Assembly (NCBI GenBank): GCA_021613535.1
Contig: CP075492.1
Location: forward strand, 868,001-932,000
Length of the DNA stretch: 64,000 bases
Source of the DNA: Adineta vaga
Taxonomy: Eukaryota > Animalia > Rotifera
Direction: 5' to 3'
The translations under genes were made by a program, and so were the position numbers. The notes under the pieces were generated by a model. The model saw only the letters and a program-made list of their open reading frames with translations, did not search any database and had not been told where the DNA came from. Position 1 is the stretch's first letter. Each line of letters begins with the position of its first letter. This document shows positions 14,224 to 64,000 of this stretch, piece after piece.

Positions 14224-14501
14224 AGGGTGTGGGTGTGGGTGTGGGCGGGTGTGGGTGCGGGTTTGGGGTGGATAAATGTAGGTGAGTGTGAGTGTGGGTG
14301 GTGGATAATGTAATTATCGTCCATTCAACCACAGCCAAACCCATCCATATAAAGTTGTAAAACAAAGTTTTGAAATATCACTAATAAGATTTATGTGAGT
14401 GTGTGTGGTTTGCGTGAGGATCTGGATGTGAAAGAATTTATTACACAGCTACACTCACATCATAACCACTCTCCCTCCTACAACGAAACCCACACCCACA
14501 A
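14224..14501. repeat. interstitial (TGTGGG)n-like tract and degenerate hairpin copy
   Basis: AGGGTGTGGGTGTGGGTGTGGGCGGGTGTGGG at 14224; C-rich CCCACACCCACAAG near 14490. Confidence 0.65.
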
Positions 14502-21423: not shown

Positions 21424-21492
21424 TCTTGAGGATGTGGGTGTGGGTGGGTTCTTTTATCTTGTTTCAGCTACACCCACACCCACACCCCTCAA
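21424..21492. repeat. telomere-repeat hairpin element
   Basis: TCTTGAGGATGTGGGTGTGGGTG...CACCCACACCCACACCCCTCAA. Confidence 0.75.
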
Positions 21493-21515: not shown

Positions 21516-22394
21516 TTATAGATCATGAAATCGAAGTTCTTGTGAAGATAAATCGTCATTCATGACTTGTAAAATAAGACATCGATTATTTAGTAAAGTA
21601 GCATACATTATACTTTTACAATCGTAATCAATTGTTTGTTTAAGTTTACCGTTGTTGTCAATCAAAAATAGTTTTTTGTTATCCCATGGTACAAGAAGAA
21701 ATTCTCCTACCGGTAAAGAAAGTAGATTATGAGAATATTTATCAGTAAATGGAACAGTTTTTAATAATTTCATATTTTCTGCGCGACGTAGTTCAAACCA
21801 ACAATTGTTACGATATTCAGTTAAAATCAGACCTACACGTGTTCCATCACTGTTAAAACGAATCTTGCAAATTTCTTGATGTGATTGACAAGAAATAGGT
21901 GGACGAAATGTTGACATTAAATTCCAATCTGATAGATTGTAGAGTTTTATAACAGATCCAATACCATCATGACTTATCATAAATTTTTCGTTGGAAACTG
22001 TAAATGTTATTGACGAATATTTAAATGTTTTTATTTGTAATAATTGGGATTGTGTAGAATCAGTCATATCTAATCCATAAAGTATTCCTTCACTAAGAAT
22101 AAGAAATTTATTTAAATATAATGACCAACACATATCATTTATTTCATCTAATTCATGGTCAATTTTTCTTACAATAATTCCTTCTGCATTAATAAGACAA
22201 AAACTTTTGGAAGGACATATAATGATAAAATCATTATTAGCTGCCATTGCCCAATTTTGTACATCAATATTCATACTAAGTCTTGCTTTTTGTTTCACAT
22301 GATTGATATATAATAGTGCAGCAGATCCCATTATCGTTGATGTGTTATTATCAGTATGTGTTGTTACCATTACTTCAAAAACAATAATTTTCAA
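21516..22394 (-). CDS. intronless hypothetical beta-propeller (WD40/NHL-like) protein; start uncertain
   Basis: 292-aa ORF with beta-strand-rich repeats (INDMCWS, ICKIRFNSDGTRVG, LFLIDNNGKLKQTI). Confidence 0.55.
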   Translation of the reverse strand: MKIIVFEVMVTTHTDNNTSTIMGSAALLYINHVKQKARLSMNIDVQNWAMAANNDFIIICPSKSFCLINAEGIIVRKIDHELDEINDMCWSLYLNKFLILSEGILYGLDMTDSTQSQLLQIKTFKYSSITFTVSNEKFMISHDGIGSVIKLYNLSDWNLMSTFRPPISCQSHQEICKIRFNSDGTRVGLILTEYRNNCWFELRRAENMKLLKTVPFTDKYSHNLLSLPVGEFLLVPWDNKKLFLIDNNGKLKQTIDYDCKSIMYATLLNNRCLILQVMNDDLSSQELRFHDL

Positions 22395-29817: not shown

Positions 29818-29881
29818 TTGAGGGTGTGGGTGTCTGTATAGATATGAGTGAAGAAGATATACTCTCACCCACACCCTCGAG
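29818..29881. repeat. telomere-repeat hairpin element
   Basis: TTGAGGGTGTGGGTG...CACCCACACCCTCGAG. Confidence 0.75.
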
Positions 29882-34173: not shown

Positions 34174-35558
34174 TTCAACTTCTAAATTTATAAGTTTATA
34201 ATTCGAGTACTCGAGTTTTAAACTATTCAACTTCTAAACTTATAAAGTTATAATTCGAGTACTCGAGTTTTAAACTATTCAACTTCTAAATTTATAAGTT
34301 TATAGTTCGAGTACTCGAGTTTTAAACTATTCAACTTCTAAACTTATAAAGTTATAATTCGAGTACTCGAGTTTTAAACTATTCAACTTCTAAATTTATA
34401 AGTTTATAGTTCGAGTACTCGAGTTTTAAACTATTCAACTTCTAAACTTATAAAGTTATAATTCGAGTACTCGAGTTTTAAACTATTCAACTTCTAAATT
34501 TATAAGTTTATAGTTCGAGTACTCGAGTTTTAAACTATTCAACTTCTAAACTTATAAGTTTATAATTCGAGTACTCGAGTTTTAAACTATTCAACTTCTA
34601 AACTTATAAAGTTATAATTCGAGTACTCGAGTTTTAAACTATTCAACTTCTAAACTTATAAGTTTATAATTCGAGTACTCGAGTTTTAAACTGTTCAGCT
34701 CGAAAAAAGCTGGCTAGGTGAAACCATGATTGAGCACTTCGCTTCTACCCCTGCACACTCACTTGGGCTGTTCCCTTGCAACACCCACACCCTCACTTTG
34801 CTCGTCGCCTCACAGCACTAACTCCCGCAGCCTCACTTTGCTTGTTCCCTTGCAACACCCACCACCGCACCCACACTTTGCTCGTCGCCTTACAGCACTT
34901 ATCCCCGCACCCTCACTTTGCTTGTTCGCGTGCAACATCCACCCCCACACCCTCACTTTGCTCGTCGGGTTACAACACCTACCTCCGCACCCACACTTTG
35001 CTCGTCGCCTCACAGCACTTACCCCCGCACCCTCACTTTGCTTGTTCGCGTGCAACACCCACCCCCACACCCTCACTTTGCTCGTCGGGTTACAACACCT
35101 ACCTCCGCACCCACACTTTGCTCGTCGCCTTACAGCACTTACCCCCGCACCCTCACTTTGCTTGTTCCCGTGCAACACCCACTCTCACACCCTCACTTTG
35201 CTCGTCGGGTTACAACACCCACCTCCGCACCCACACTTTGCTCGTCGCCTCACAGCACTTACCCCCGCACCCTCACTTTGCTTGTTCCCGTGCAACACCC
35301 ACACCCACACCCACACCCACACCCTCAGTTTTCAAAGTTCAAAAGTTCAGTAGTTTAAAACTCGAGTACTCGAATTATAAACTTATAAATTTAGAAGTTG
35401 AATAGTTTAAAACTCGAGTACTCGAACTATAAACTTATAAATTTAGAAGTTGAATAGTTTAAAACTCGAGTACTCGAATTATAAACTTATAAATTTAGAA
35501 GTTGAATAGTTTAAAACTCGAGTACTCGAACTATAAACTTATAAATTTAGAAGTTGAA
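34174..35558. repeat. foldback structure: 10 x 52-bp array, GC-rich 40/120-bp core, 4 x 52-bp inverted array
   Basis: Unit TTCAACTTCTAAA..TTCGAGTACTCGAGTTTTAAACTA at 34174-34693; reverse complement at 35351-35558; core ~34765-35327. Confidence 0.95.
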
Positions 35559-38254: not shown

Positions 38255-39211
38255 CTATTTCAAACCAAATTGATTTTTGAACAAGACATTTCCACCCAAA
38301 AATGTAAAGCTCGCAGTACCGGAGCCAGTGCCAGATTCTGATATCGTGTTTACCGCATTGCCTACTAGATTGGTGACTTGTGTTCGCGTCCAGCCTGGTT
38401 GGATGGTGAAGTATTGTTGGTATGTAATAGTATAAATTCCTGTATCGAGACCAGACTGTGATCTGCTGGAGAGCACACCACCCTCGAAGTAAAAGGTGAC
38501 AGTGGACGATTGTGAACCTGAATACCGTACAGTGGTATAGTAGAATCCAGAGCCTGGTATACCCGACTGTGAAACAATATATCATGGACCACCCAAGAGC
38601 TGAGTTACTTTTTGTTGTGTTCAACCAATCTGAATTGTCTGATACTGTTGAAAAGTAATGATGCTGGTCAGCGCAGATGCCAAGCCGTTTGCCGTTTTCA
38701 AATTAAGCTGTCCACCGATAAATGTAAAGCTTGCAGTGCTGGAGCCAGTGCCCGAACCTTTGTATTGAACGTTAAGATTCGCTGAACTAGCCGTGCCAGA
38801 TTCCGATGTCGCAATTCCTGAACTACCTGTCAGATTGGTAACTTGTGCTCGCGTCCAGCCGATTTGAATTGTTGCAAATTGCTGGTACGTGATGATATAT
38901 ACTCCCGTATCCAGACCGGACTGATATCTACTGAAGAGCTTACCACTAGTGAAAGTGAAGCTGGCGATGGCACTGGACGACTGCGATCCCAGATACTGAA
39001 TAGTGATTGAGTAGGATGTAGAACCTAGTATACCCCACTGTGAAGTAGTAGTTCCCGGTCCGTTCAAGAGCTGAGTGACTTGTTGCTGTGTCCATCCGAG
39101 CTGAATTGTCTGGTATTGCTGCAAGGTGACGGTGTAGGTAGTAGCAGCGTCCAGATGAAGTGTGATGATCGAAAGAATTACCAAGAGAAAACTAGTCGTC
39201 GTGGAAAACAT
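38255..39211 (-). CDS. secreted BLIP/DUF3862-like four-repeat protein; premature TGA stops leave a 196-aa two-domain product
   Basis: Signal peptide; repeats T.QQY.TIQ.GWT..QV..L.G...ASFTF..G.L....Q.GL; intronless; in-frame TGA at 38621 and 38582; ancestral stop at 38255. Confidence 0.8.
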
Positions 39212-41273: not shown

Positions 41274-42221
41274 ATGAGCAATTTAACTAATGAAATCACG
41301 TCTCTCAATTTAATAGCTCGAAATATTTTAGTTTTTGGTGGAACATCACTCTTCATCCTTGGTATTATTGGTAATTCTATCAATATTGTGGTATTTTCTT
41401 CATTTTCACAATTCAATAAAGGATCAACACCAATCTTTCTACTATTTTCATTTCTTGGAAGTCAAACAACACTTCTCACTGGTTTATTACCTCAATTAAT
41501 CTATACATTGAGTGGAACTAATCCACTTGTTATTGATCTTATTATTTGTAAATTACGATGGTTTATTGGCCCTAGTAGTGCAACTATTGCATTACATTGT
41601 TTCATTTTAGCAGCTATTAATCAATATTTATTAACCTCTCGTCACATTCGATGTCATCATTGGATCACTCGAAGACGAGCTTTTATAATGTGTTTATTTG
41701 TTATCATTTATTCTCTTGGATTATTTAGCTCGAATTGTGTTTATTACACACATACACAAAATTCCATTAATATGACACAATGTGATATACCAAATATAAT
41801 AGCTGCAACATATAATATATATAATGGTTTAGTTACCTATAGTCTACTTTCCATCTTTGTTTTATCGATATTTTCATTTCTTACATGGCAAAATATTCGA
41901 AATAAAATAGTTCGACGTTCACAGATCGAAAAGGCACTAACACGTTTATTACTTGCACAAATAATAGTAGTCCTATTAACATCGCTTGGTTTTGTTATAC
42001 AACGAATGTATACACTTTATACAAGAGATCTGCCGAAGAATGCACTTCAAATTGCTCAAGAAAATATTGCTTCAAGTGTATTTGCAATAATTGGTTATAT
42101 TATTCATACATTTTCATTTCCAACATATTTTTTAAATTCAAAAATGTTTCGTAACAATATTTTATCTTCAATATTAAAAAGAAACCATCGAATTGAACCT
42201 ACTATTCCGCCAAACACATAA
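41274..42221 (+). CDS. intronless rhodopsin-like (class A) GPCR
   Basis: GIIGNSINIVVF, ICKLRWF, AAINQY and YFLNSKMFR motifs; C-terminal RIEP shared with the GPCR at 25542. Confidence 0.88.
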   Translation: MSNLTNEITSLNLIARNILVFGGTSLFILGIIGNSINIVVFSSFSQFNKGSTPIFLLFSFLGSQTTLLTGLLPQLIYTLSGTNPLVIDLIICKLRWFIGPSSATIALHCFILAAINQYLLTSRHIRCHHWITRRRAFIMCLFVIIYSLGLFSSNCVYYTHTQNSINMTQCDIPNIIAATYNIYNGLVTYSLLSIFVLSIFSFLTWQNIRNKIVRRSQIEKALTRLLLAQIIVVLLTSLGFVIQRMYTLYTRDLPKNALQIAQENIASSVFAIIGYIIHTFSFPTYFLNSKMFRNNILSSILKRNHRIEPTIPPNT

Positions 42222-42341: not shown

Positions 42342-42398
42342 TCTTGAGGGTGTGTGTGTGAGGGTGTATCATCTTCATTGACACTCACACCCTCAAGA
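42342..42398. repeat. telomere-repeat hairpin element
   Basis: TCTTGAGGGTGTGTGTG...CACTCACACCCTCAAGA. Confidence 0.8.
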
Positions 42399-42790: not shown

Positions 42791-42861
42791 TGATGGGTGT
42801 GGGTGTGGATGAGGATGGGTAATATTCTTCTTTTTACCCTCACCCTCACCCACCCATACCC
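42790..42861. repeat. telomere-repeat hairpin element
   Basis: Near reverse complement of the 39381 copy, including the spacer AAGAAGAATATTACCCATCCTC. Confidence 0.75.
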
Positions 42862-52107: not shown

Positions 52108-53960
52108 ATGACAGAGGAACACATATCAAAAGCTCCATCTGGTATAAAAATTTACTTAAATCATCGATGGAATTTATTTCGAACTGGATATCTTATATTA
52201 ACATGGATTATATTTGTAAGTTTCACCATAGTCTAGACGATTTCATCAAACTCACATAATGCTTTGCTCATTATCAAAACAAATTTTGTTAATGTTTCAG
52301 AGCTTTCATCTGGAAATAATTGGTCCAACAATGGCAATACTTGCATCCAATATGCAAGTAACCTATAGTGGTATGGGTACGGTACTTGCCTTGAGAAATG
52401 CCGGATATTTAATTGGAAATCTTTTTGGTGCTGTTTTACAAACTATTGTTAAAAATCATTCTGAAGGTCTTCTCTTTGTTGCATTCATTTTACCTGCTAT
52501 TGGTAAAAGACAATAGAAACAAAATCTTTTTTAACTCATTTTCTATTCAGTGATGTTTGCAACTCCACATGTAACATCATTGATAATAATGTGTATTTTG
52601 TCTTTTATTCACGGACTTTCGAAAGCTTTCACAGATTTAGGTAAATTGAAGGTTTTTTTTTGTTGAAATAAGTTGCATTTGGATGAATTTATAGGTGGAA
52701 ATAATCTTTTATTACAAATGTGGGGTATACATGCGGCAGCACCATTGAATGCAGTTCATTTAGGATATGGTCTTGGTGCTATTTTTATTAATTTACTTGT
52801 TCGTCCATTTATTACAAAGAAAGCTTCCTCAAGTGATAATCCAAATATTATCATTCCATATTCAGTTGCTGCCGGTCTATGTTTTTTAATTTCACTCGGA
52901 CATTTAATATTTTATATAGTAAAAGTAACACATCGACGACAAAAAGTACAAGTACAAGAACAACAAGAGGTAAATAGATAGAATGAGAAAAAATTACTAA
53001 AAAACAATCTTAAGAAGGTTGAATCTGATCATTCTTCAAATATATCTGATATATTAAGGTTGACTATACTGCTGCAAACACTAATCCAGTCAATATTGTT
53101 AATCATTCAATAGATATAAAAAATTATTCTCCATATTCTCCTCGAACATGTGGTCGTGGAGATTTTCAATATGGATTAATTCTTTCTATGATATTCATAA
53201 TTTATACATTTTCTATCGGTGGTAGTTCTCAAACATTTTCAAAATTCTTTTTCTCTTATCTTCAATCGGACCAATTCAATCTTTCAACTGAAAATGCAAG
53301 TTGGGGAATGATTCTCTTTTGGTTTTCATTTTCGGTAAGTATCGAAACAGTCGAGTATTAAAAAAAGTCTTCACTATAGTTCTAATCGAAAGTTTGTTCG
53401 ATGAATCACTTATATGAAAACAATTTTGTTGAAAAATAGGTTGGACGATTGATATTTGCCACCGTATCTGTGTATGTGTCCGTAAATAAATGTCTGAATA
53501 TTATCTGGTTTGGAGCTTTATGTCTTTCTATCGCTTGGCTTATTTTTGTTTGGGTGATTGGTTTAACATTTGCCAGTTTATTGGTACTTGGTGCAATAAC
53601 TGGTTTAATATTTTCACCAATGTTTCCATTATCATTTGCATTTTTTAATCAAAGATTAAATGTTATTCCCATGCTTCTTGCTTTACTTCTATCTGGAACG
53701 GCATCTGGTGCAATGACGCTGAATAAAATAGCAGGTCAATTTTTGAAATGATAGATTAAACTTATTTCTTTGTCAATGTTTAAGGTTCAGTAATGGACTA
53801 CAATCCAAAACATTTTCCAACGCTTTTAGCTGTTTGTATATTAATGGCAGTTATTCTTTATATTATTTCACATCTTGTTTACTATTTTCATCAACGAAAT
53901 CGAGTGCACAATGATCAAATTCATTCTCCTCAATGCTTCAATGAAGAAGAGGAGAATTAA
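52108..53960 (+). CDS. MFS transporter (MFSD4/NaGLT1-like), 7 exons
   Basis: ATG at 52108; exons joined by GT-AG introns; IIGPT, GGNNLLLQMWG, HLGYGLGA, VGRL and FSPMFP motifs; stop TAA at 53960. Confidence 0.85.
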
Positions 53961-54193
53961 AACAAAAGTTTTCCGGACAAAACCGAATCTGTTCATTTCA
54001 AAATTGTTGAATTAATAAGACATTATAATATGACGCACTCTTAATTTTAGTTCTAAAATAAATTTCTATATACTTATATCTAAACATGCGGACCATGAGA
54101 CGTGTTATCATACATACATACATACTTTAGGAAGAGTCTCCTTCTGGAGAAAAGAAAGAATAAATACATCTCGTTCTAGATATACATACGTAT

Positions 54194-57100
54194 CAGTGAT
54201 GGGATCGGTTCGTGGTTTTGTGAAACCGAACCGAACAGAGAAAGTTGAAAATCGAACCGAATCGAAACCGAAAAACCGAAGTACATTAAAAACTTCTATG
54301 TTGAAAAATAGCTATAAATGAGTTAGTCGATTCAAACATTTAATTTTCTTTATCAGTTAATATTTTATTCATAAGATAAACAGATTAATTTACATATGTA
54401 ATGAAAAAATTCCCTGTAATGATTGACAGAATTCCTAACAAAATTACAGTTCAATAAGTTCACCACCACTTGGTTCATCAAATCTTTTCTTGTAGAAATC
54501 GTATGAATGATTAAATACTATGTCGTTGACCGTATCTGGAGATAGTCTTGAACGTTTTTGAGTAATAATATTACCAGTGAAGCTGAACTCACGCTCAACA
54601 GCTCCACTTGTAGCTGGTACAGACAAAACACGAGCTGCTAATTTTGCTAAAATAGGATACGTTGTTCCTTTTGCCTTCCAAAAAGAGAAAGGATTATATT
54701 CTTCGTGTTCTTGATCAGCATTAGATATTGTTGTTTTGTCTGAACCGTGTTTTAGAAACATATCAATTTCCATTTCATGTGAAGAAACTTTCGAAGATTC
54801 TTTTCCACCAGCATCATCTGTCTCGGTCATTGAGTAAAATTCTGACATATAAGAACTTGAAGTATTTTTGGTAAATTGATTTTGTTTTCTTTGTGATGGT
54901 GATGGTACATGTTGATCAATGTCGAAGATTAGCATTTCCTGTTTCACATATTCAATGCATTCTTCTCTTTGTTTTGTTGTTAAGAAAGTCATTTTACGAG
55001 TTTTAGAATTGACGAAAGTTGACATAAGATGTATAGGATCGAAACAAATCATTTCTTTAAGGATTTGTTTTGGCCGCTGACGAAAAAACATAATACCTAT
55101 ACATAAAATATCATTGTATGGAATATAATCAATAGAAGAGAGATCATTTACCCTTTTCTTGTTTTGAGTCAGTCGTTTTGGTTTCTAACGAAGAATTAAT
55201 CATGAAAATACTTGGAGTGACTGTGTGAATGGATGGAGTGTACGAAGATTGTACACGTTTTAAAACATATGTCCATGGTTTTAAGAATTCGATCAACTTG
55301 TCCAATATAGATGAACTAATTAAGTTAATTCTTTTTTTATCTAAAATGTTTTTCATCAAATATTTCAGTTAATGTTGTTAAAGATCTCCGAACACTCTTT
55401 AAACAATTATAAAGCGAAAGCCATCGTACAATTGTACTTTGTATAAGAATAGCAGCACCTTTATCTTCCAAATCTTGATTTAGATTAACCTATAAAAGAT
55501 TGTATTATATGTCACGTTGTTAAATTCAAATTACCTTCTTGACATATTATACCAGTTCTTCGCAATGAATTATAGTTATCAGTGTACGTTTTGCATCAGA
55601 TGATAGTTGGGAAAGAGTAGCTGTTGCATTCTTTTTGCTTGAAGCTGTAGATGTGTAAGCTATGGTTTTATTTCGTCTATCGATTAATTTCTCATCGATA
55701 TCACTATCAGATGATACATTTCCTTCAGTATCACAACCGCTCATTTCATCATCTTCATCATCATCGATTGTTGCATATAAATCACCAAATGCTATATCTT
55801 TCTTTGCTTTATTTGTTTCTGTTTGAAAAAATGTTTTTTGAAGAACGTTATTCAAACAATGACCAATGCAATGTATCACCGTAAATTTCTCTAATGCTTT
55901 TTTGAGATTGCTACCTCTGTCACACATCCATATAATATCATACATAAAGGGTTGTAAATCAAATAATGATAATCCCTCTTCGATCACCTAATCCATGTAT
56001 GAAATGTAGATGCAACAAATAGAAATGGAAGAAACTTACTAGAAGAACATTTTTCGCTGTTTTATTAGGTTTTCTAAATGGCAAACAAAATAATTCGAAT
56101 GTACACAAATTCCATGTTTCATCCACCCATTGAGCAGTGCAACCTAAATAGGATATTTTCTTGTATCCTTCTGACCAAATGTCGGGAGACAAAGTTAAAC
56201 ATCTTCTTTTTGCTGCTGTAATCAAAATATTTTTCATTTTACTTCTTCCGACATTGCCCATATGTTTTATTTCTTTCATAACTGTTCGTCGACAAGGTAA
56301 TAGCGAAGATGCAGGTGTTGGACCATACATATAGCTTTTGAAATAGAAGGAATAATACACAATTACCATCACAAAAAATTAAGACATACCTATTTGAATG
56401 CAATGATCAATCAAGTTTCTCAAACCACTATCTTCAACCAGATTTACTGGACGTGTTCCAGAACATATCCATTCGCTAATTACACTAGGAAGTAAATGTT
56501 TCTGTTTTTAAATATTCTTGGTATTAAGTGCAAGACATGCAATTCGTGTTGGTGATGATATCAGCGGTTTTTCGATTGATGATTTTAATTTCGTATGATT
56601 TTAATTTGATGTTATTGGACATTTATGATTGAAAAGGGTTGTTGTCGTTGATGAATAGGAATATGTTTGAAAACAACTCTTACATGATGCAAATTTGTTG
56701 ATGATTTCATATTTATCTGGACCTAAAATCTTTGCTGGTAATCCAAATTCAGACCAGCACGATGCGCTTGATCTTTTATCGATTATCTTGTATTGATCTT
56801 TTTTGTGTTTTAGACAAATAGCAATACTAGTTGTCGTGTAATTTTCTATAGAATCTGGTGTACTAATAGTATCATTATCCATTATTTGTATAGCTGATGA
56901 TGATGAAACCTCAGATGAAGCACATAATGAAGAAGTTTGGTCCATTAATACAAGTAATTCGATCTTGTAATGAATTTAGATATTCTTTTTAAATCACACA
57001 CTGAGAGAGGTATTTATAGGGAAGCAAAGAAGCAATAACAAGAATTAAATACTATTAACCCTTATGAAGCGAACACAAAGAGAATAAATGTTGTTAATTC

Positions 57101-57340
57101 TTCTATTATACATTGTTTGTAATTTGTTTATGTAACATACGAATCAGACGAATATCACTATTTTACATTCTCGGACGACATCTTTTCCATTTCGACTATA
57201 TATCTTTTCTTTTATTCTTTTATTTCGGTTCACGTCGACAGAAAATGTGTTCGCTTTGATTCAGAGAAATTGACATAAAAACATATCGGTTCGAACCGAA
57301 AAAATTCATATTCAAACCGGACGAACCGATCCCATCACTG
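54194..57340 (-). mobile_element. hAT transposon (Ac/Hermes-like) with spliced, disrupted transposase 56945-54444
   Basis: Perfect 20-bp TIR CAGTGATGGGATCGGTTCGT; TSD ATACGTAT/ATATGTAT; AACCGA subterminal repeats. BED-type CxxC..H.C, SPDIW, CDRGSN, CIGH, VRWLS and VEREFS motifs. Stops at 56601 and 55547. Confidence 0.95.
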
Positions 57341-57628
57341 ATATGTATATTCTAGCAGGTAAAGAGACCGCATTTATTTGCAAAGTGAAAGCTACAAATA
57401 CTCGTTTGAACTGGCCACAATGGCAACCATATGAATTAGATATTGGTACTACTGTTGAAATAACACCTAACGTTTAAACAATCATTGAATGAGGCCGGAA
57501 AATGTTACAATGCACATTCTAAACGAACTTACGATTATGATAAGAATTTCTATATTTGTGTGTATCATAATTTAATTTGCTTTATCTTAATTAATTTCTT
57601 TTCGAAAATTGTTTGTGAGCGAAAATAT

Positions 57629-57697
57629 TGTGGGTGTGGGTGGGTGCTGGGTAAGAATGTTTTTGTACCTCACTCACACTCACACCCACACCCGCAA
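57629..57697. repeat. telomere-repeat hairpin element
   Basis: TGTGGGTGTGGGTGGGTG...CACTCACACCCACACCCGCAA, ~30 bp past the sulfotransferase stop. Confidence 0.75.
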
Positions 57698-57723
57698 TCA
57701 AGCTATTAGCTCGATAGAAAATT

Positions 57724-58991
57724 TCATTTATTGCCATTACCTTCAGAGGAACCTGAAGTAGTAGACGGTGAGGAAAGAAACAAATTAATATAGTCATTGT
57801 ATTGTGCCTTGATATCATCATGTGTCACATGTATATCAGCTAGACTGTAGGTATGTCGACCTTGTTTACCTTGCGGATTATCACGAAGCCAATTATGCAT
57901 GGCGACTTCGAACTTGTTTGACCAACGAAAACCGAAATGGTCATAGATTCGACGCACGGTGACAATCGGTTGCTGTATTAACTCGTCATAGTTGATATCC
58001 AGAATTTTGTGATCTAAGTCGGATCTGCGAGTACGAAACTCTACGAGATGTTTGATCATTTTATCAATGTACTGCAGAGTACGTGAGTTGACTATGTCTC
58101 GATATTTTGCGTTATCTTCGTCGAAATAAACATGTGAAAGTGCCCACAACATGTTGCAAAATGAAGGCAGTACTTTGTCAAGTTGTCGATGAGTCATGAC
58201 CAGCGATGCATGCGGAAAATGATGAAGAAGAGTATCCAAGTACAGGCAATGTGCGACTGATTTTAGTACCCAATGCGATGGGGGTGTGTCAACAGAATTC
58301 AACATGCGCAAAAATGTCTCGTGATAATCATAGGCAAAATCTTTGTTCGTTGGGTTCCAAATCCAACTGTCGAAATCAGATTGATGAGGACTAGGGACTG
58401 CTAATAATGGTAACAAGATGCCTGCTTGATACAAAATATGTATATCTTCTTCAATTGGAAATTCTGGATGAGATTCTTTCAAGAAGCTCGCTCGGCCGAC
58501 TAATTGTTCATCTAACTTTGCGGATAGTCCTGCTGCAGCAGATCGTCGTTCGTGTTCGACAGAATTAGAGCGTGTGACTGGTGGAACAGGCTGAACACAC
58601 ATGTCAGTGAAGAGTGGAGCACGACACTCAGGATCACACGCCAGTAAATTGTATAATAGTGTTGAACCTGTACGAGGAATGCCACATATAATAAGTGGAC
58701 CAAGATTTGGGAAATCACGTCGAAGAGACTCATTGTTCGTTGTACAATAGTTTAGTACTTGTTTACTTTCTGTATGCAGTTTGTCGAGCATAGAGAGTAA
58801 CAGGTGACGACCCACAGGGGTAATTTCTGTGCTTCCAAGCACGAGTCGACGATGTAATTCAAACGCATGTAAAATGGTGCTGTGATATCCAAAACGACTT
58901 TTTGTATTCTCAGTTAGATCATCTTCATGTAAGTTCACTCCTCAAGTAGGATTGGTTGATTCACAATAACTTCATTGAGTGTTGTGTCCAT
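57724..58991 (-). CDS. bacterial-type sulfotransferase (Sulfotransfer_3-like), intronless; apparent 1-nt frameshift near 58938
   Basis: PAPS loop ICGIPRTGSTLLYNLL; WVLKS..H, MTHR and YDELIQQP motifs. Nearest ATG is 58991 (MDTTLNEV), out of frame with the 404-aa body. Confidence 0.88.
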
Positions 58992-59076
58992 ATTTTGTGC
59001 AAGTTGTAATATCACCTAAATTACTAAAGACCGTTTTATGAGCAACTTGAAAGTCAAAATCTTAAAAATATTGACT

Positions 59077-59325
59077 GAAAAGAGACAAAATAGAAAAAAA
59101 ACTGCATCTGATAATACAAGTAAGATGATATCTGCATGATTGTGCATTTCAACAAAAAGAAAGAAAAGTGACGAAGAGAAAAAACAGGCATGTAAAACCT
59201 TTTCTAACATAACCCAATTTTATCTTCGTCACTTTTTTTTCTTTTTGTTGAAATGCATGATCATGATGATATCATTTTACTTTTATTATTAGATGCAATT
59301 TTTTTCTTCTATTTTGATTCTTTTC
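59077..59325. repeat. inverted repeat (~110-bp arms) in the divergent promoter
   Basis: TGCATTTCAACAAAAAGAAAGAAAAGTGACGAAGA is mirrored by TCTTCGTCACTTTTTTTTCTTTTTGTTGAAATGCA. Confidence 0.85.
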
Positions 59326-59474
59326 GTTAGTCGTATATCAGAACAGTCATTTAGACATTATCATGAGTTTTCTATTGTTCGAATAAAATCATATATTAAT
59401 TCATCTTTCTTAAGAAAAAATATTATTGAATATTTGTTTTAGTAATATAATATCAATCAACATTGAAAATATCC

Positions 59475-60765
59475 ATGTCATTATTATCATCAAAAAAACC
59501 CTTAACAATTTTATTTGTACCTTTGGATACATTAGGTCATATCAATGCTTCTATTGGAATAGCTGAACCATTGAAACAACGTGGACATCGAATTGTTTTT
59601 GGAATATTAACAGGTTGGAAAGGAAAAATTTCACCTTATGGTTTTGAAGAAATTTTATATGGTGAAGAAACTCAACCAGCACAACTCTATGTAGATTTTA
59701 TTAAAGCTTGTGCGAATGAATTACGAAAAAATTCTTATGATCAATTAGCAATTTTTGAACATTGTGTTCAACGTAATTTAATAAATAGTGTTAAATATAA
59801 TGATCCATTTTTTCGTGATATAATTAAACAAATAAAACCTGATATAATTATTGTTGATCATTATATTTGTCAACCAGCAATTGTAACAGCAGGTGTTCCA
59901 TGGGTTTGGTTAATGTCAAGTAATCCATTGGGTATTAATGAAGATAATTGTCCACCACGTGGTTCAGGTTATTCAGCTGATAGTGATCGACAACAATGGA
60001 ATGAATTTCGACAAGAATTTAAGAAAATTTCTGATCCAAATTGGGAAGAAGTTAATCAATGGTTAATTGAACAAGGTGCACCACCATTAACTAAACAAAT
60101 GTGGCCTTTTTTTCAAAATCCATCTCCTTATTTAAATCTTTATTTATGTCCAGAAGATATTGATTATACTGACTTACGATCATATCCACCTAAATGGATT
60201 CGATGTGATTCATTAGTACGAACATCTGATGTATGTGACTTTGAAATACCTGAAAAATTGATTAATAAACCAGGAAAGTTGGTCTATATGGTCAATGGGC
60301 TCATTTGGATCGGCAGATTTATCATTAATGAAACGATTAGTTAATATTTTATCAAAATCATCTCATCGATTTATAATTTCAAAAGGTCCATTAGGTGATG
60401 AATATTCTTTATCTGATAATATGTGGGGTGAAAATTTAATTCCACAAGTTAAAATTTTACCATTAGTAGATTTAGTAATAACACATGGTGGTAATAATAC
60501 AATTACAGAAATCTTTTATTTTGGTAAACCATTAATTATTTTACCACTTTTTGGTGATCAATTTGATAATGCACAAAGAATAGAAGAAAAAGGTTTTGGT
60601 ATTCGATTAAATACTTATTCTTGTACTGAACAAGAATTATTAAATGCAATTGAAATATTATTAACTAATAAACAATTAGAAGAGAAATTACAAATTATAT
60701 CAAAAAAGATGAAAGAAAATAATAATCGAGAAAAAGTTGCAGAATTAATTGAAAATCTTCTATAA
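59475..60765 (+). CDS. soluble GT1 UDP-glycosyltransferase (MGT-like), intronless; +1 frameshift at ~60290
   Basis: GHINAS catalytic His; RGHRIVF; (Y)MSMGS split by an extra G; PQVKIL..VITHGGNNT..E...GKPLIILPLFGDQ signature; no signal peptide and no C-terminal TM anchor. Confidence 0.92.
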
Positions 60766-61165
60766 TCAGTTTCTTTTTTTTTGTCATCTTATATTTACAG
60801 TGAACACTCGAAATAAAAGTCGCATGATGAGTTAAGTCTTTTTATTCGATTGTTTAGAATGTAATGAATAGAAAGATATATGTGATAAATGATAAGAAAT
60901 AACAAAAAATGAATATTTAAATAGATGATGAAGCAAATTTATTATTTACAAACAACAATCTCAAGGATAATAATCATGATAAAGTATTACCTGTAACTTT
61001 AAAAGAAAGACAAAGTACAAAATAAATTTATTCTGATGACAAAAGATCATTTTTTGCATATAAATTAATATGAGTATGTATATATCATAGATTTAAACTT
61101 TTCAGAGTCTTAACTAAAGTGAAGATTTACATTTATCGTCAATAGTTTATTCTGTAAAAAAAAGA

Positions 61166-64000
61166 ATGTATATTCTAGGTGAACAAAGACAATCATCACG
61201 ATTAGATTGGGCTGAATCATCATGGACAAGATGGATACAAATCCCATTACAATTATGGATAACACCTATTCTATCCTTGAGTAATAAACGTATACTTGTA
61301 GAGAAGGATCTTGACGATGTTTCTATCAAAGATAAATGTTCAATTTTATTGAATAGAGTAAATCAGTATGATTCTAAATGGTCAGGTACATGGAATATTT
61401 TAAAACGAACATTTTATAAAGATTTTCTAATAAGTCTATTACTTGTTATTCCACTTATAATGGCTCAAATAGCACAACCATTGCTTATTCGTCAAATTAT
61501 TCTTTGTATTAAAGATCAATCAAGATTACCATATTACGCTGGTTATCTACTTGGTATTGCTCTTTTCACTTCTTGTATAGTACAAGCCATTGTTTCTCAA
61601 CAAATTTTCTTTCGAAATAGTCGTATAGGTATGCGAATTCGTAATAGTTTATCATCTATCATCTATAAACACTTATTAACAACTAATACTGCAACTCTCC
61701 ATAAGATTACTGCTGCTCAAATGATCAATTTAGTTTCGAATGATGTCAGTAAATTTGAAGAACTTAGTATGTTTATTCATACTCCATTACTAGGAATTGT
61801 GGAAGCTCTTGTGGCTTTTGGCCTTATTTATTGGCACATTGGTTTACCAACAATATTTGGATATGCAGTATTGATTTTATTAATACCTGTACAATTTATT
61901 TTCAGTCGACAATTCAGTCGATATCGAAACATCACAATGAAATGCACAGACAAACGTGTACAAACGATCAATGAACTTGTTAATGGTTGTCAAATTATAA
62001 AAATGTATAATTGGGAAAAAGCAATGGAACAACGAGTACGTGAAACACGTCAACGTGAAGTTTCGAACATTTACAAAGTCAGTTGCTTAAGAGCTCTCAA
62101 TGTTGCTTTTGCTTTTACATCAGTACCCTTAATTTCTCTTGCTACATTTGGTGGTAGTTGGTTATTGGATCGAACTTTACTGTCAGAAAATATATTCACA
62201 ATAATAGGCTTTTTCGTCATGGTCCGAGTTCCAGTAACAATTGGATTACCCAGTGCGATCGAAAAATTCAGTGAAGCTCGTGTTTCTGCAAGACGAATTG
62301 ATCAATTTATGCAACTTGATATATTATCGAATAAACATGTAAAAATGGAAAATAACAACAGAGATCATATTATTCTAATGGAAGATGCATCATTTTCTTG
62401 GAAAGATACTCCTTCTTTATTTTCTCTCAATCTTAAAGTCAAAAGTGGAACTTTAGTTGGAATAAAGGGTCCAATTGGTTCTGGTAAATCAACTTTATTT
62501 GCTGCTATTCTAGATGAGATCAATCTTGTTAGTGGTAAATTACAATTATATGTTAATTCAATTTCATATGCACCACAATCAGCTTGGATATTTGCTGATA
62601 CGATTCGAGCGAATATTCTTCTTGGCAAAGCAATGGATAATGAACGTTATAAGAATGTCATAAAAGCATGTTGTCTTGATATTGATCTTGAAAATTTCGG
62701 TGAAGTTGGTGATTTATTAATGATTGGTGATAAAGGAATAAATTTGAGTGGTGGACAAAGGGCTCGTATATCGCTTGCACGTGCTCTATACGCTAATGCT
62801 GACTTATATTTACTCGATGATCCACTTGCTGCCGTTGATCCAAAGGTGGCAAAGCATATTTTTGATCAATGTATTGGACCTCGTAGTCTCCTTCGTGGAA
62901 AAACTCGAATATTAATAACACATCAAACACATTTCTTAGTTGAAGCAGATCAAATCATTTCTATGATAAATGGTCATATTGAAGAATCACGGATGGAACT
63001 ATCAAATAATATATCAGAAGTAGAATCATCTGACAACAAGGAAACAGATTGGATACCTAATGCTTCTGTAAATGATATGAATTCAATTGTTAAGAATGAG
63101 ACATCAGTGGAAGGTGCAATTGAATGGCGTGTTTGGCTCAAACTATTTACTGCACCACCTTTACGATGGTTTGGTTTGTTTCTAATGATTAGTTTTATGC
63201 TCATTAATGAAGCTGCATACGACTTTTCAAATGTTTGGCTTGCTATGTGGTCTGATAAAGATAATAAAGAACAACGATTATCGTGTTATGCTTATATCTA
63301 TCTCGGAGCTATAAGTTTTACATTTATCATAGCAATCATACGTGTTGGTTTTGGCTATTATATTATGTTGCGTGGTTCGACCTATTTACACAATGGAATG
63401 CTCAAAGGTATGTTATATACTTCATTACGTTTCTTTGAAAGTAATCCAAGTGGAAGAATCTTGAATCGAGCAAGTAAAGATCAACAAGTATTAGATCAAT
63501 CATTACCATTAGCTTTAATTGATACTATGCAATATCTCTTAATGATTATTGGTTCTATTACAATCATTGGAAGGACTAATCCATGGGTACTTCTAATTCT
63601 CATTCCTTTGATTCCTTCAGTTTTATGGCTTCGTCGATTTTACTTGTGTTCAAGTCGTCAACTGAAACGACTTGAAAGTGTAACACGTAGTCCTATTTAT
63701 ACACTCTTCTCATCATCATTTGACGGACTGACTAGTATTCGTGCATTTAATGTTCAAGATGATTTTTTAAATATGTTTATGGAAAGAATTGATACTAATT
63801 CACGAGCTTACTTCATTCTTTCTACATCTGCATATTGGTTTGGTTTACGACTTGATGTTATAGTATCCTTTCTCACGTTGGTTACTGCTCTTCTTGCAGT
63901 CGCTCTTCGTCATCAAATTGAATCGTCGGCAGCAGCACTTAGTTTAACATATTGTATCAGTTTAACAGGTCTCTTTCCATGGGCTATGCGACAATCAGCC
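61166..64000 (+). CDS. ABCC/MRP4-like ABC exporter, partial (runs off the window; absent from the ORF track)
   Basis: Continuous frame with TMD1, Walker A GPIGSGKST (~62468), LSGGQRAR (62744), Walker B LYLLDD, FFESNPSGRILNR, LKRLESVTRSP, ending WAMRQSA. An upstream exon is possible (CTAG|G near 61178). Confidence 0.95.
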   Translation, partial: MYILGEQRQSSRLDWAESSWTRWIQIPLQLWITPILSLSNKRILVEKDLDDVSIKDKCSILLNRVNQYDSKWSGTWNILKRTFYKDFLISLLLVIPLIMAQIAQPLLIRQIILCIKDQSRLPYYAGYLLGIALFTSCIVQAIVSQQIFFRNSRIGMRIRNSLSSIIYKHLLTTNTATLHKITAAQMINLVSNDVSKFEELSMFIHTPLLGIVEALVAFGLIYWHIGLPTIFGYAVLILLIPVQFIFSRQFSRYRNITMKCTDKRVQTINELVNGCQIIKMYNWEKAMEQRVRETRQREVSNIYKVSCLRALNVAFAFTSVPLISLATFGGSWLLDRTLLSENIFTIIGFFVMVRVPVTIGLPSAIEKFSEARVSARRIDQFMQLDILSNKHVKMENNNRDHIILMEDASFSWKDTPSLFSLNLKVKSGTLVGIKGPIGSGKSTLFAAILDEINLVSGKLQLYVNSISYAPQSAWIFADTIRANILLGKAMDNERYKNVIKACCLDIDLENFGEVGDLLMIGDKGINLSGGQRARISLARALYANADLYLLDDPLAAVDPKVAKHIFDQCIGPRSLLRGKTRILITHQTHFLVEADQIISMINGHIEESRMELSNNISEVESSDNKETDWIPNASVNDMNSIVKNETSVEGAIEWRVWLKLFTAPPLRWFGLFLMISFMLINEAAYDFSNVWLAMWSDKDNKEQRLSCYAYIYLGAISFTFIIAIIRVGFGYYIMLRGSTYLHNGMLKGMLYTSLRFFESNPSGRILNRASKDQQVLDQSLPLALIDTMQYLLMIIGSITIIGRTNPWVLLILIPLIPSVLWLRRFYLCSSRQLKRLESVTRSPIYTLFSSSFDGLTSIRAFNVQDDFLNMFMERIDTNSRAYFILSTSAYWFGLRLDVIVSFLTLVTALLAVALRHQIESSAAALSLTYCISLTGLFPWAMRQSA

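Follow-up and report, generated by a model that had tools for sequence, protein, structure and literature searches.

Do two conjugating enzymes and an export pump that lie side by side in an animal genome work together, or do they merely share an address? This question is raised by a 64-kb stretch of Adineta vaga chromosome 3 (0.87–0.93 Mb; hereafter the window, to which coordinates refer unless marked C3), where a sulfotransferase gene (ST, minus strand) stands head-to-head with a UDP-glycosyltransferase gene (UGT, plus strand), itself followed by a gene for an ABCC4-like pump (ABCC, plus strand). Intergenic DNA inside this trio totals less than 800 bp. A preliminary description of the window had seen here an operon-like module for detoxification or secondary metabolism, assembled by an animal from unrelated, partly foreign genes; no publication on the ST-UGT-ABCC trio was found in the literature searched. 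The three-gene neighbourhood is transcribed and under purifying selection, and its linkage is genuine, expressed and restricted to the Adineta-type lineage. The trio is neither an operon nor part of an NRPS cluster, and its arrangement fits a tag-and-export unit without proving one.

Integrity of the enzyme genes

In the reference assembly both enzyme genes appear broken. ST is represented by an ORF of 404 aa (57724–58938, minus strand) in which the ATG is absent, and a surplus G at 60290 causes a frameshift that splits UGT, annotated by NCBI as a 207-aa fragment only. Such breaks would be expected of decaying pseudogenes, a possibility already named in the preliminary description, and they were judged from contigs of four public runs. 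Contigs of all four runs omit one base at 60290 and those of three of the four insert a base behind 58938, in each case at full depth, RNA-like runs included, and even in a run that keeps both alleles apart elsewhere. Because of these corrections, the UGT frameshift and the missing ATG of ST are assigned to single-base assembly errors, and both enzymes are intact. An alignment with A. ricciae, A. steineri and Rotaria likewise showed one extra G in the UGT of the window. The base missing between 58938 and 58939 conceals the ST start; once restored, the ORF reaches an ATG at 58991, yielding a coding sequence of 422 aa (57724–58991, minus strand) whose N-terminus agrees with that of A. ricciae. 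The corrected UGT (59475–60765, plus strand, 429 aa; start of the reading frame given as 59463/59475) is free of internal stops. Ratios of dN/dS were 0.14–0.20 for ST and 0.09–0.21 for UGT against Adineta-type orthologues; overall, with values of 0.09–0.21, all three genes of the trio show purifying selection or long open frames. Complete ORFs with such ratios refute decay, which retains a negligible probability.

Two enzymes of different ancestry

ST matches Pfam Sulfotransfer_3 (PF13469, 100.4 bits) and, since no hydrophobic segment was found in it, should be soluble. Its AF2 model (pLDDT 89) has STF9 (2z6v) as best fold match, with TM-scores of 0.74/0.76, and superimposes on STF1 (2zq5) with scores of 0.70/0.77. 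Both PAPS loops, GxPRTG[ST]T and THRxxDxxxPS, show no variation across the ST alignment. By sequence and model, ST is thus a cytosolic PAPS-type sulfotransferase of Stf1/Stf9 fold. As to its origin, relatives of ST are widespread in bacteria, and the enzyme had been called bacterial-type. This holds for the fold but not for the ancestry: in the ST tree, the bdelloid clade groups with protist sequences (Fonticula, Lithocolla, Rozella, Clydonella and Jenningsia), apart from a second, presumably bacterial, clade, which points to a non-animal ancestry of protist rather than bacterial affinity. The bdelloid ST family is large, its remaining members being encoded at other loci. One paralogue in A. 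steineri adjoins a P450 and a PAPS synthase, an arrangement that is not conserved.

UGT matches the Pfam models UDPGT (67.9 bits) and EryCIII-like_C (46.4 bits). It had been described as soluble and of the type acquired horizontally by mites, and both traits were borne out. No hydrophobic segment was found in UGT, and its A. ricciae orthologue gave full-length matches to Tetranychus urticae UGT203A2 (E 2e-80) and UGT202A2 (4e-75), human UGT2B being a far weaker solved match (E ~1e-13). The nearest named relatives are sequences of mites and MGT-annotated ones, and a previous study already grouped the UGTs of mites, rotifers, springtails and bacteria (PMC9113151). On these comparisons UGT is predicted to be a cytosolic GT1/MGT-type enzyme (soluble, YjiC-like), most similar to the UGTs that acariform mites gained by horizontal transfer. 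The family to which it belongs is single-copy and occurs throughout the bdelloids sampled, in Adineta as well as in Rotaria. Neither ST nor UGT nests among ordinary animal enzymes, as had been anticipated.

The compact head-to-head placement of these enzymes, the matches of UGT to EryCIII-like/macrolide glycosyltransferase models and the abundance of bacterial ST relatives could all be read as traces of a single foreign fragment that landed beside a resident ABCC gene and might, for instance, have been part of a bacterial natural-product cluster with its tailoring enzymes. Against such a joint arrival, the nearest relatives differ (protists for ST, mites and MGT-annotated sequences for UGT), UGT occurs throughout the bdelloids sampled and has neither partner beside it in Rotaria, ST comes from a large family with members elsewhere, and third-position GC is strongly different between ST and UGT (8% versus 34%). 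We therefore regard a common arrival as very improbable.

The pump and its transcript

The ABCC gene (61070–64000, plus strand, continuing to C3:932906) was delimited by a spliced contig, Pfam matches and similarity to ABCC4. Its start had been placed 400 bp after UGT, at a Met (61166) from which an uninterrupted frame runs to the end of the window, and the gene had been considered intronless there. Neither statement stands. In an RNA-like run, X13, a contig joins 61073 to 61179, revealing a first exon made of the ATG (61070–61072) and one further base, a 105-bp GT..AG intron (61074–61178) that contains the Met at 61166, and a second exon that starts at 61179 and continues to the end of the window; the spliced message stays in frame. 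Between the UGT stop and the true ATG there are 304 bp (spacer 60766–61069), and the contig, with 59 nt before the joint, extends the 5′ UTR upstream to at least ~61015. Within the window, the product matches ABC_membrane in two stretches (206.8 bits), with ABC_tran between them; NBD2 (L031:265–906) lies beyond the window, preceded by one or more further short introns. The top solved match was ABCC4 (598.7 bits, versus 494.7 for ABCC2), as previously proposed, and because that alignment begins at residue 26 of both proteins, the pump would lack a TMD0. ABCC is predicted from these data to be an animal-type ABCC4-like exporter.

Transcription and spacers

The notion of an operon-like unit is contradicted by the opposite strand of ST, the 5′ exon and intron proper to ABCC, and the fact that no RNA contigs bridging trio genes were found. 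Run X13 covers ST, UGT and ABCC, with zero coverage at 59100–59299 in the ST-UGT spacer, ST coverage ending near 59000 and UGT coverage beginning at 59441. In another RNA-like run, X17, contig depth was 39–57 for UGT, ~3 for ST and none for ABCC; contig depth is a poor measure, and these values do not suggest tight co-expression.

The ST-UGT spacer (58992–59474) measures 483 bp from ATG to ATG (58991/59475), close to the ~480 bp reported before, and is presumed to act as a bidirectional promoter. Within it, two arms of 88 nt each (59095–59182 and 59218–59305) form an inverted repeat that is unique in the A. vaga genome. This palindrome was not found in A. ricciae, L034 or L035, and in A. steineri both arms are present ~360 bp apart; comparison of the spacer across taxa revealed no conserved block. 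A telomere-like hairpin, (TGTGGG)n-loop-(CCCACA)n, lies 26–99 bp past the ST stop (57625–57698), and a similar one ~145 bp past the ABCC stop, outside the window (C3:933050–933102). Allowing at most one mismatch, the window contains 33 occurrences of GGGTGTGGGT, where 0.53 would be expected.

Extent of the conserved block

Upstream of ST, A. vaga carries a multi-exon gene on the plus strand (52108–53960) and a hAT transposon on the minus strand (54194–57340; 3147 bp). Without the latter, the former would lie ~620 bp from the ST stop, in agreement with the preliminary description, which had taken it for an MFS member of the cluster. A polytopic membrane protein is indeed encoded (six or more hydrophobic segments), but the MFS name was not upheld, as no exon, searched singly without a joined model, had a Pfam MFS match; the Atlas offers a weak MFS_1/Folate_carrier hint. 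Its membership failed altogether: searches of the relatives' contigs gave no match to the gene, which adjoins ST in A. vaga only and is outside the conserved trio. So is the transposon, inserted between this gene and ST. Its transposase is fragmented, with the Dimer_Tnp_hAT (64.5 bits) and zf-BED (20.8 bits) matches on separate ORFs; its ends are perfect 20-bp inverted repeats within an 8-bp target duplication, ATACGTAT/ATATGTAT (7/8 bases identical), and the genome holds only one other long copy, 68% identical.

Of the Adineta-type genomes sampled, only that of A. steineri lacks the complete adjacent trio; the expected synteny among bdelloids is confirmed in part. A. ricciae shows ST<>UGT>ABCC, its two spacers measuring 487 and 297 bp. 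Two further Adineta-type genomes have ST<>UGT><ABCC, the pump gene (76–81% identical to that of A. vaga) being inverted yet adjacent. A. steineri keeps UGT>ABCC and has cleanly lost ST. In Rotaria, no ST or ABCC was found within 10 kb of the UGT orthologues. On the contigs of the four Adineta-type relatives, no orthologous ORFs common to the A. vaga flanks were found.

Shared function or shared descent

In the A. vaga genome (100.8 Mb), this UGT type has a single intact locus, against ~5 loci of the ST family and ~9 ABCC4-like loci. On these numbers, in a post hoc estimate, the triple adjacency is very unlikely to arise by random placement. In the functional reading, ST and UGT would add sulfate from PAPS or sugar from a UDP-sugar, in the cytosol, to lipophilic xenobiotics or endogenous metabolites, and the MRP4-like pump would expel the resulting conjugates, anionic ones especially. 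Sulfate and glucuronide conjugates are among the organic anions that ABCC4/MRP4 exports. The genes would form three separate transcription units, gathered by rearrangement in the Adineta-type lineage and probably not transferred as a single block. As such a candidate conjugate-and-export unit the trio is plausible, although we would rate this at somewhat less than an even chance.

About as likely is that the adjacency was inherited without a common function: three genes for handling stress or xenobiotics, with unrelated substrates, would have landed together by chance at a chromosome end prone to rearrangement and rich in foreign genes, and stayed together because the block is compact; it holds so little intergenic DNA (less than 800 bp) that it could come through rearrangement whole with no selection to keep it. 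The setting suits this reading. The region is subtelomeric, lies between NRPS arrays (C3:0.24–0.31 Mb and C3:1.58–1.65 Mb) and contains transposons, FG-GAP-repeat ORFs and BLIP-like ORFs, and bdelloid subtelomeres have been described as foreign-gene-rich (PMC11258130). In line with it are also the absence of the trio from Rotaria, the dispensability of ST in A. steineri, the unequal representation of the three genes among RNA contigs, the unconserved ST-UGT promoter region, and other suggestive adjacencies that are not conserved. Chance neighbours, however, would hardly be expected to place an ST and an ABCC gene around the sole intact UGT of its type, to stay adjacent through an inversion of ABCC while the sampled flanks share no orthologous ORFs, and to be all under purifying selection or with long open frames.

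The subtelomeric position also recalls the bdelloid NRPS/PKS clusters, which are subtelomeric and flanked by transporters and P450 (PMC11258130), and the trio could tailor and export a secondary metabolite, for instance from such horizontally acquired clusters, rather than serve detoxification. We consider this improbable, since no condensation domains were found within ~600 kb of the trio, and neither the window, the 10 kb that follow it nor the relatives' contigs contain an NRPS/PKS gene.

Comparison with known systems

The mycobacterial enzymes Stf1 (2zq5) and Stf9 (2z6v) are both the top sequence matches of ST (E 4e-20 and 4e-27) and its top fold matches (TM 0.70–0.77), with the PAPS-binding loops conserved, although identity is merely 21–24%. 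Protist homologues are closer to the bdelloid clade (33–37% identity) but carry an N-terminal hydrophobic anchor that the bdelloid enzyme lacks. The closest solved relatives of UGT, T. urticae UGT202A2 and UGT203A2 (PDB 6pnt, 7lvy), are like it soluble GT1 proteins of ~430 aa without signal peptide or membrane anchor. Enzymes of this type glucosylate xenobiotics in T. urticae. They are only ~37% identical to UGT and belong to an expanded family, whereas the bdelloid enzyme forms a single-copy orthologue group and, unlike them, is flanked in A. vaga by an ST and an ABCC pump. The pump shares with human and bovine ABCC4/MRP4 the organization of a short MRP (TMD1-NBD1-TMD2-NBD2) but is one of at least nine intron-poor ABCC4-like paralogues, with 44–74% mutual identity.

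As a neighbourhood, the trio resembles the subtelomeric NRPS/PKS clusters of bdelloids, flanked by ABCB1, MFS transporters and P450 (Nowell et al. 2024, PMC11258130), in joining foreign-derived enzymes to an animal-type efflux transporter at a chromosome end; it differs in having no NRPS/PKS, conjugating instead of biosynthetic enzymes, and an ABCC rather than an ABCB pump. Metabolic gene clusters of fungi and plants are defined by co-regulation and a common pathway, whereas the trio is known as a linkage, in one bdelloid lineage only; with them it shares tightly linked non-homologous genes, divergent promoters, a transporter and, possibly, a single pathway.

Intact coding sequences behind two reference errors

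Genes for a sulfotransferase (ST, minus strand), a UDP-glycosyltransferase (UGT, plus strand) and an ABCC4-like pump (ABCC, plus strand) lie side by side on Adineta vaga chromosome 3, at 0.92–0.93 Mb (assembly of 100.8 Mb in six contigs; the window covers 868001-932000), and all three were found to be intact, transcribed and under constraint. In the reference, Pfam searches placed a Sulfotransfer_3 protein at 57724-58938 (minus), a UDPGT/EryCIII-like protein in two frames at 59463-60344 and 60295-60765 (plus), and an ABC_membrane/ABC_tran/ABC_membrane protein in an open frame running from 61166 to the window end (plus). Alignment with orthologues from A. ricciae, A. steineri and two Rotaria traced the frame break in UGT to one extra G at about 60290. 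When contigs of four public sequencing runs (Logan contigs, not raw reads) were placed on 57700-63699, this base was absent from all four at full depth (24/24, 199.8/199.8, 21/21 and 39.2/39.2), and one base was inserted behind 58938 in three of the four. One run, X3, separates alleles at other sites, yet carries the corrected form alone at both error sites; the frame breaks are thus errors of the reference consensus and not a dead allele.

The corrected UGT encodes 429 amino acids (59475-60765) and the corrected ST 422 amino acids, with its ATG at 58991 and an N-terminus that agrees with that of A. ricciae. With the breaks repaired by contigs (four runs for UGT, three for ST) and both reading frames complete, the two genes could not be regarded as pseudogenes. 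Comparison with Adineta-type orthologues gave dN/dS values of 0.09–0.21 for UGT and 0.14–0.20 for ST. Two single-base errors have hidden both enzymes from annotation, the NCBI model of UGT being a 207-aa C-terminal fragment alone (I4U23_011004), and surveys of expression or horizontal transfer based on annotation will therefore have missed or truncated them.

Transcription and gene structure

The trio spans about 7.2 kb. ST and UGT diverge from a common spacer of 483 bp, ATG to ATG, which matches the head-to-head distance of about 480 bp in the preliminary description once the ST start is restored, and 304 bp separate the UGT stop from the start of ABCC, instead of the 400 bp first given. Run X13, which behaves as RNA, covered ST, UGT and ABCC and left 59100-59299 uncovered. 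One of its contigs joined 61073 to 61179 across GT..AG ends: the ABCC ATG at 61070-61072 is followed by one more base, a 105-bp intron and an in-frame continuation, so that ABCC is not intronless within the window as had been thought. The gene extends beyond the window to 932906 of chromosome 3, with at least one further short intron ahead of the second nucleotide-binding domain (NBD2).

RNA-like contigs of UGT stopped at 60735 and restarted in a separate, spliced 5′ exon of ABCC, although rare read-through could escape such contigs. Because RNA contigs bridged no genes and ST is on the opposite strand, three transcription units are indicated, the pump with a promoter region of its own. The operon-like organization initially proposed was accordingly discarded, strand, the gap between RNA contigs and the spliced 5′ exon of ABCC itself all standing against it. 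In a second RNA-like run, X17, only UGT was well represented; the depth of contigs reflects expression poorly, and tight co-expression of the three genes is not evident from these contigs. Gene-level expression values for the trio were not found in the supplement of PMC11258130.

Identity and origin of the sulfotransferase

ST matched PF13469 with 100.4 bits against a cut-off of 27, and its sequence matched only two solved structures, 2z6v and 2zq5. Its AlphaFold model (pLDDT 89.1) superposed on the same two, with TM scores of 0.74/0.76 for 2z6v (STF9, Mycobacterium avium) and 0.70/0.77 for 2zq5 (STF1, M. tuberculosis); the next fold classes scored 0.5 or below, and tyrosylprotein and cytosolic sulfotransferases fell far short of STF9 and STF1. 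In an alignment of 25 sequences, the PAPS-binding residues of the 5′-phosphosulfate loop and the 3′-phosphate motif were invariant (G85, R88, T89 and G90; T248, H249, R250 and S258). Bdelloids have many members of this family: among the best 120 matches, every protein with a name is from Adineta or Rotaria.

The best non-rotifer representatives were 33–37% identical to ST, and those among them that have names were protists (Jenningsia, Fonticula, Lithocolla, Clydonella, Rozella and Thecamoeba). No other animal occurred among the named matches within the best 150 representatives, most of which are nameless. In a tree of 114 rows, the bdelloid clade (support 100) fell inside a group of 35 rows that includes Fonticula, Lithocolla, Rozella, Clydonella, Jenningsia and a sixth EukProt sequence without a name. 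This group was split with support 99 from the other 79 rows, of which Thecamoeba, an amoebozoan, was the sole named one. These 79 rows are presumably bacterial, since a scan of bacterial genomes found many homologues, 26–34% identical, in Planctomycetota, Pseudomonadota, Acidimicrobiia and Myxococcota. The protist homologues have an N-terminal hydrophobic anchor, whereas the bdelloid proteins have none. The bacterial origin suggested for ST in the preliminary description does not agree with a bdelloid clade nested in a protist-containing group apart from the presumed bacterial rows. Judged by this tree, ST is non-animal in type, with closest kin among eukaryotic microbes and not bacteria. It may have come from a protist donor, or it may be an old eukaryotic gene that other animals have lost.

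Identity and origin of the glycosyltransferase

UGT exceeds the Pfam cut-offs for PF00201 (67.9 against 19.5 bits) and PF06722 (46.4 against 31.7 bits). Its closest solved relatives, both matched over the full length, were two enzymes of the mite Tetranychus urticae, UGT203A2 (2e-80) and UGT202A2 (4e-75); residues 8-426 of the A. ricciae orthologue (83% identical) aligned to UGT203A2 (E 2e-80). Bacterial CalG1, YjiC and OleD came next, at about 1e-20 to 1e-14 over the C-terminal half, and human UGT2B reached about 1e-13 to 1e-11. No hydrophobic segment was detected in the 429 residues (top 19-residue Kyte-Doolittle mean 1.36, none reaching 1.6), and there is neither a signal peptide nor a C-terminal membrane anchor, unlike in ER-resident animal UGTs. 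The earlier assignment to the soluble MGT type was upheld by the Pfam domains, the full-length match to mite enzymes and the absence of a hydrophobic segment, and UGT is classed as a soluble GT1/MGT-type enzyme (YjiC- and OleD-like), predicted to transfer the sugar of a UDP-sugar to small molecules.

The nearest named non-rotifer relatives were YjiC-like proteins of oribatid and astigmatid mites (37% identity), and metagenome proteins annotated as MGT were also among the nearest. In our tree, the bdelloid sequences formed one clade (support 100) with Adineta-type and Rotaria-type branches; the gene was single-copy across the sampled bdelloids, the A. vaga genome holding one other fragment only. 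As its nearest relatives outside rotifers are either animals that acquired the gene or MGT-annotated proteins, UGT is, by sequence, non-metazoan-like. In a published tree, UGTs of mites, rotifers, springtails and bacteria fall together, and the mite and rotifer genes are treated as bacterial acquisitions, with Gladyshev et al. 2008 given as the source for the rotifer transfer (PMC9113151).

The possibility that ST and UGT arrived together on one fragment was rejected, as their nearest relatives, distribution and GC3 all differ; GC3 is 34% in ST, 8% in UGT and 19% in ABCC. The composition profile shows a GC-rich island at ST (0.41 versus about 0.30). A truncated UGT on a contig labelled Didymodactylos carnosus (CAJNOK010006227.1) was 83–84% identical to that of A. 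vaga, as close as A. ricciae and far closer than Rotaria (66–71%). Such closeness is unexpected in a bdelloid that branches deeply, and an Adineta-like contaminant may be the source of the contig.

The ABCC pump and its paralogues

The domain order of ABCC in Pfam is TMD-NBD-TMD-NBD, with NBD2 downstream of the window. Solved structures scored 598.7 bits for ABCC4, 494.7 for ABCC2, 488 for ABCC1, 448 for plant ABCC2 and 446 for Ycf1. The alignment to ABCC4 begins at residue 26 in both proteins, which indicates that ABCC lacks a TMD0. Comparison with solved structures assigns ABCC to the ABCC4-type short MRPs, ABCC4/MRP4 being the nearest characterised subfamily among them, and suggests an animal origin.

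At least nine intron-poor ABCC4-like paralogues were found in A. vaga. The closest (71–74% identical), on chromosome 5 at 2.85 Mb, was considered as part of an ohnologous copy of the trio and dismissed, there being no ST, no UGT and no collinear flanks. The region 667386-683928 of chromosome 1, likewise close to a chromosome end, holds another such paralogue (47% identical, minus strand); at a distance of 8.6 kb is an ORF of 689 aa whose N-terminal Sulfotransfer_3 domain belongs to a different subfamily. Given the distance, the intervening ORFs and the other ST subfamily, this second ABCC-ST pairing was taken as a coincidence. In one A. ricciae assembly (CAJNOJ010000446.1, 11581-16504), the ABCC orthologue is duplicated in tandem over its first ca. 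390 codons, with an annotated product of 1583 aa; the duplication is absent from the other A. ricciae assembly.

The spacer and the surrounding DNA

The alignment of the ST-UGT spacer from four taxa, inspected for conserved promoter elements, contained no conserved block. About midway in the A. vaga spacer is a near-perfect inverted repeat (59077-59325) with 88-nt arms, 89% complementary and 35 nt apart, which provides mirror copies of one upstream sequence for the two divergent genes. It is unique in the A. vaga genome and absent from A. ricciae and from the relatives' contigs L034 and L035; A. steineri has the two arms, but at a distance of about 360 bp from each other.

Upstream of the trio, a hAT element occupies 54194-57340, bounded by inverted ends of 20 bp that match perfectly and by a target duplication of 8 bp (hAT dimerisation and BED-finger fragments within 54444-56945, Pfam). 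Removing it leaves about 620 bp between ST and the membrane-protein gene at 52108-53960, in line with the distance of under 700 bp anticipated. This gene had been described as an MFS transporter; Pfam searches exon by exon, solved-structure searches and a genome-wide MFS_1 scan returned no match to that effect at this locus, a weak Atlas hint apart. Elsewhere in the window are a piggyBac-like transposase gene that looks intact (11360-12682; DDE_Tnp_1_7, 291 bits), two hAT elements, GPCR genes, an intronless FG-GAP-repeat ORF of 433 aa (7969-9270) and a BLIP-like ORF (38621-39211, weak Pfam match), contents typical of the landscape of a bdelloid chromosome end.

Telomere-like hairpins of the form (TGTGGG)n-loop-(CCCACA)n recur in this DNA, often just past the 3′ ends of ORFs, as after ST, after ABCC, after the ORF at 21516-22394 and after the GPCR gene at 41274-42221. 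They were located at 57625-57698, 14225-14497, 21430-21487, 29822-29876, 34783-35324, 42348-42392 and 42795-42861 and, beyond the window, at 933050-933102 and 933470-933521 of chromosome 3. With at most one mismatch allowed, the window contains 33 copies of the motif GGGTGTGGGT, versus 0.53 expected. Such hairpins were also seen on A. steineri and Rotaria contigs, and may be either terminator-like elements or marks left by the healing of telomeres.

Gene order in relatives

Conserved linkage among relatives, expected from the preliminary description, was found in part. Two assemblies of A. ricciae have the A. vaga order, with ST and UGT head to head and ABCC following UGT in the same direction, and spacers of 487 and 297 bp. 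Two further Adineta-type genomes, represented by one ENA metagenome contig and two Logan contigs, are sisters within the Adineta-type branch of the UGT tree; they also keep the three genes together, with ABCC (76–81% identical) inverted so that it faces UGT tail to tail. A. steineri retains UGT followed by ABCC; no ST remnant was found in the 3 kb upstream, where both palindrome arms and a telomere-like hairpin are present, and this looks like a clean loss of ST. No ST and no ABCC were found within 10 kb of the Rotaria UGT orthologues, and the nearest ST relatives in Rotaria and A. steineri (53–56% identical) adjoin unrelated genes.

ORFs flanking the trio in A. vaga had no orthologue on the relatives' contigs, where the only matches were GPCR paralogues at 26–30% identity. 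The neighbour of ST is the MFS-like gene with the hAT element in A. vaga, a PqiA-like gene in A. ricciae, GPCR genes on L034 and a beta-lactamase-like gene on L035. On an A. steineri contig (CAJNOI010000085.1, 10001-21272), an ST paralogue (56% identical) has a P450 gene at a distance of 3.4 kb and, at 6.6 kb, a gene for bifunctional PAPS synthase, the enzyme that makes the sulfate donor; this arrangement is not conserved, the A. vaga PAPS synthase gene lying on chromosome 2 at 3.648 Mb with no ST near it.

Two readings of this distribution were weighed. ST, UGT and ABCC may serve one conjugate-and-export function, a reading to which we give somewhat less than an even chance. In its favour are the coherence of the predicted activities, the improbability of such adjacency at random with one UGT, about five ST and about nine ABCC4-like loci in 100.8 Mb, and the survival of the trio through the inversion of ABCC while the sampled flanks have no orthologous ORFs in common. 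About as likely is that the genes are neighbours by descent and share no function: the cluster is missing in Rotaria, ST was lost in A. steineri, the spacer between ST and UGT has no conserved block, and with less than 800 bp of spacer in the block neutral survival would be easy. Against this second reading stand the improbability of the adjacency under random placement and its persistence through the inversion of ABCC.

Discussion

If the three genes do serve one function, family membership suggests how it would work: acting on small molecules in the cytosol, UGT would attach a sugar and ST the sulfate of PAPS, and the conjugates would be exported by a pump of the MRP4 type. The mycobacterial Stf group has been linked to the sulfation of sugars and glycolipids. 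A more specific and rather unlikely version is that UGT adds glucose, ST then sulfates that sugar and the MRP4-like pump recognises the anionic sulfo-glucoside. Were this so, the Adineta-type lineage would have built an animal pathway of sulfo-glycosylation and efflux out of one protist-like gene, one gene resembling those of bacteria or mites, and a native pump, and kept it together as a cluster.

The trio adds a new member to each of three known families, and horizontal transfer of the UGT type into bdelloids and mites has already been published. To our knowledge, no other animals carry as many foreign genes as bdelloid rotifers. With two conjugating enzymes of foreign type on a presumed common divergent promoter, next to a native pump for conjugates, the trio offers a compact test case for how foreign genes are wired into host physiology. 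Its interest hinges on co-regulation and shared substrates being found. With both, it would represent a phase II/III module built by an animal from acquired parts; otherwise, it would show, as a control, how readily suggestive neighbourhoods form at the ends of bdelloid chromosomes.

Fungi and plants often have clusters of non-homologous genes that belong to one pathway; in animals such clusters are rare. ST, UGT and ABCC correspond to such a cluster in being three non-homologous, physically adjacent genes of one plausible pathway, and none of the papers searched describes this neighbourhood. Chromosome 3 carries NRPS arrays at 0.24–0.31 Mb and 1.58–1.65 Mb; with the nearest condensation domains about 600 kb away, membership of the trio in an NRPS/PKS cluster was rejected, and a part in tailoring the product of such a cluster is considered very unlikely. 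The published bdelloid NRPS/PKS clusters are a close known parallel, foreign enzymes lying there beside ABCB1 and MFS efflux pumps at chromosome ends (PMC11258130).
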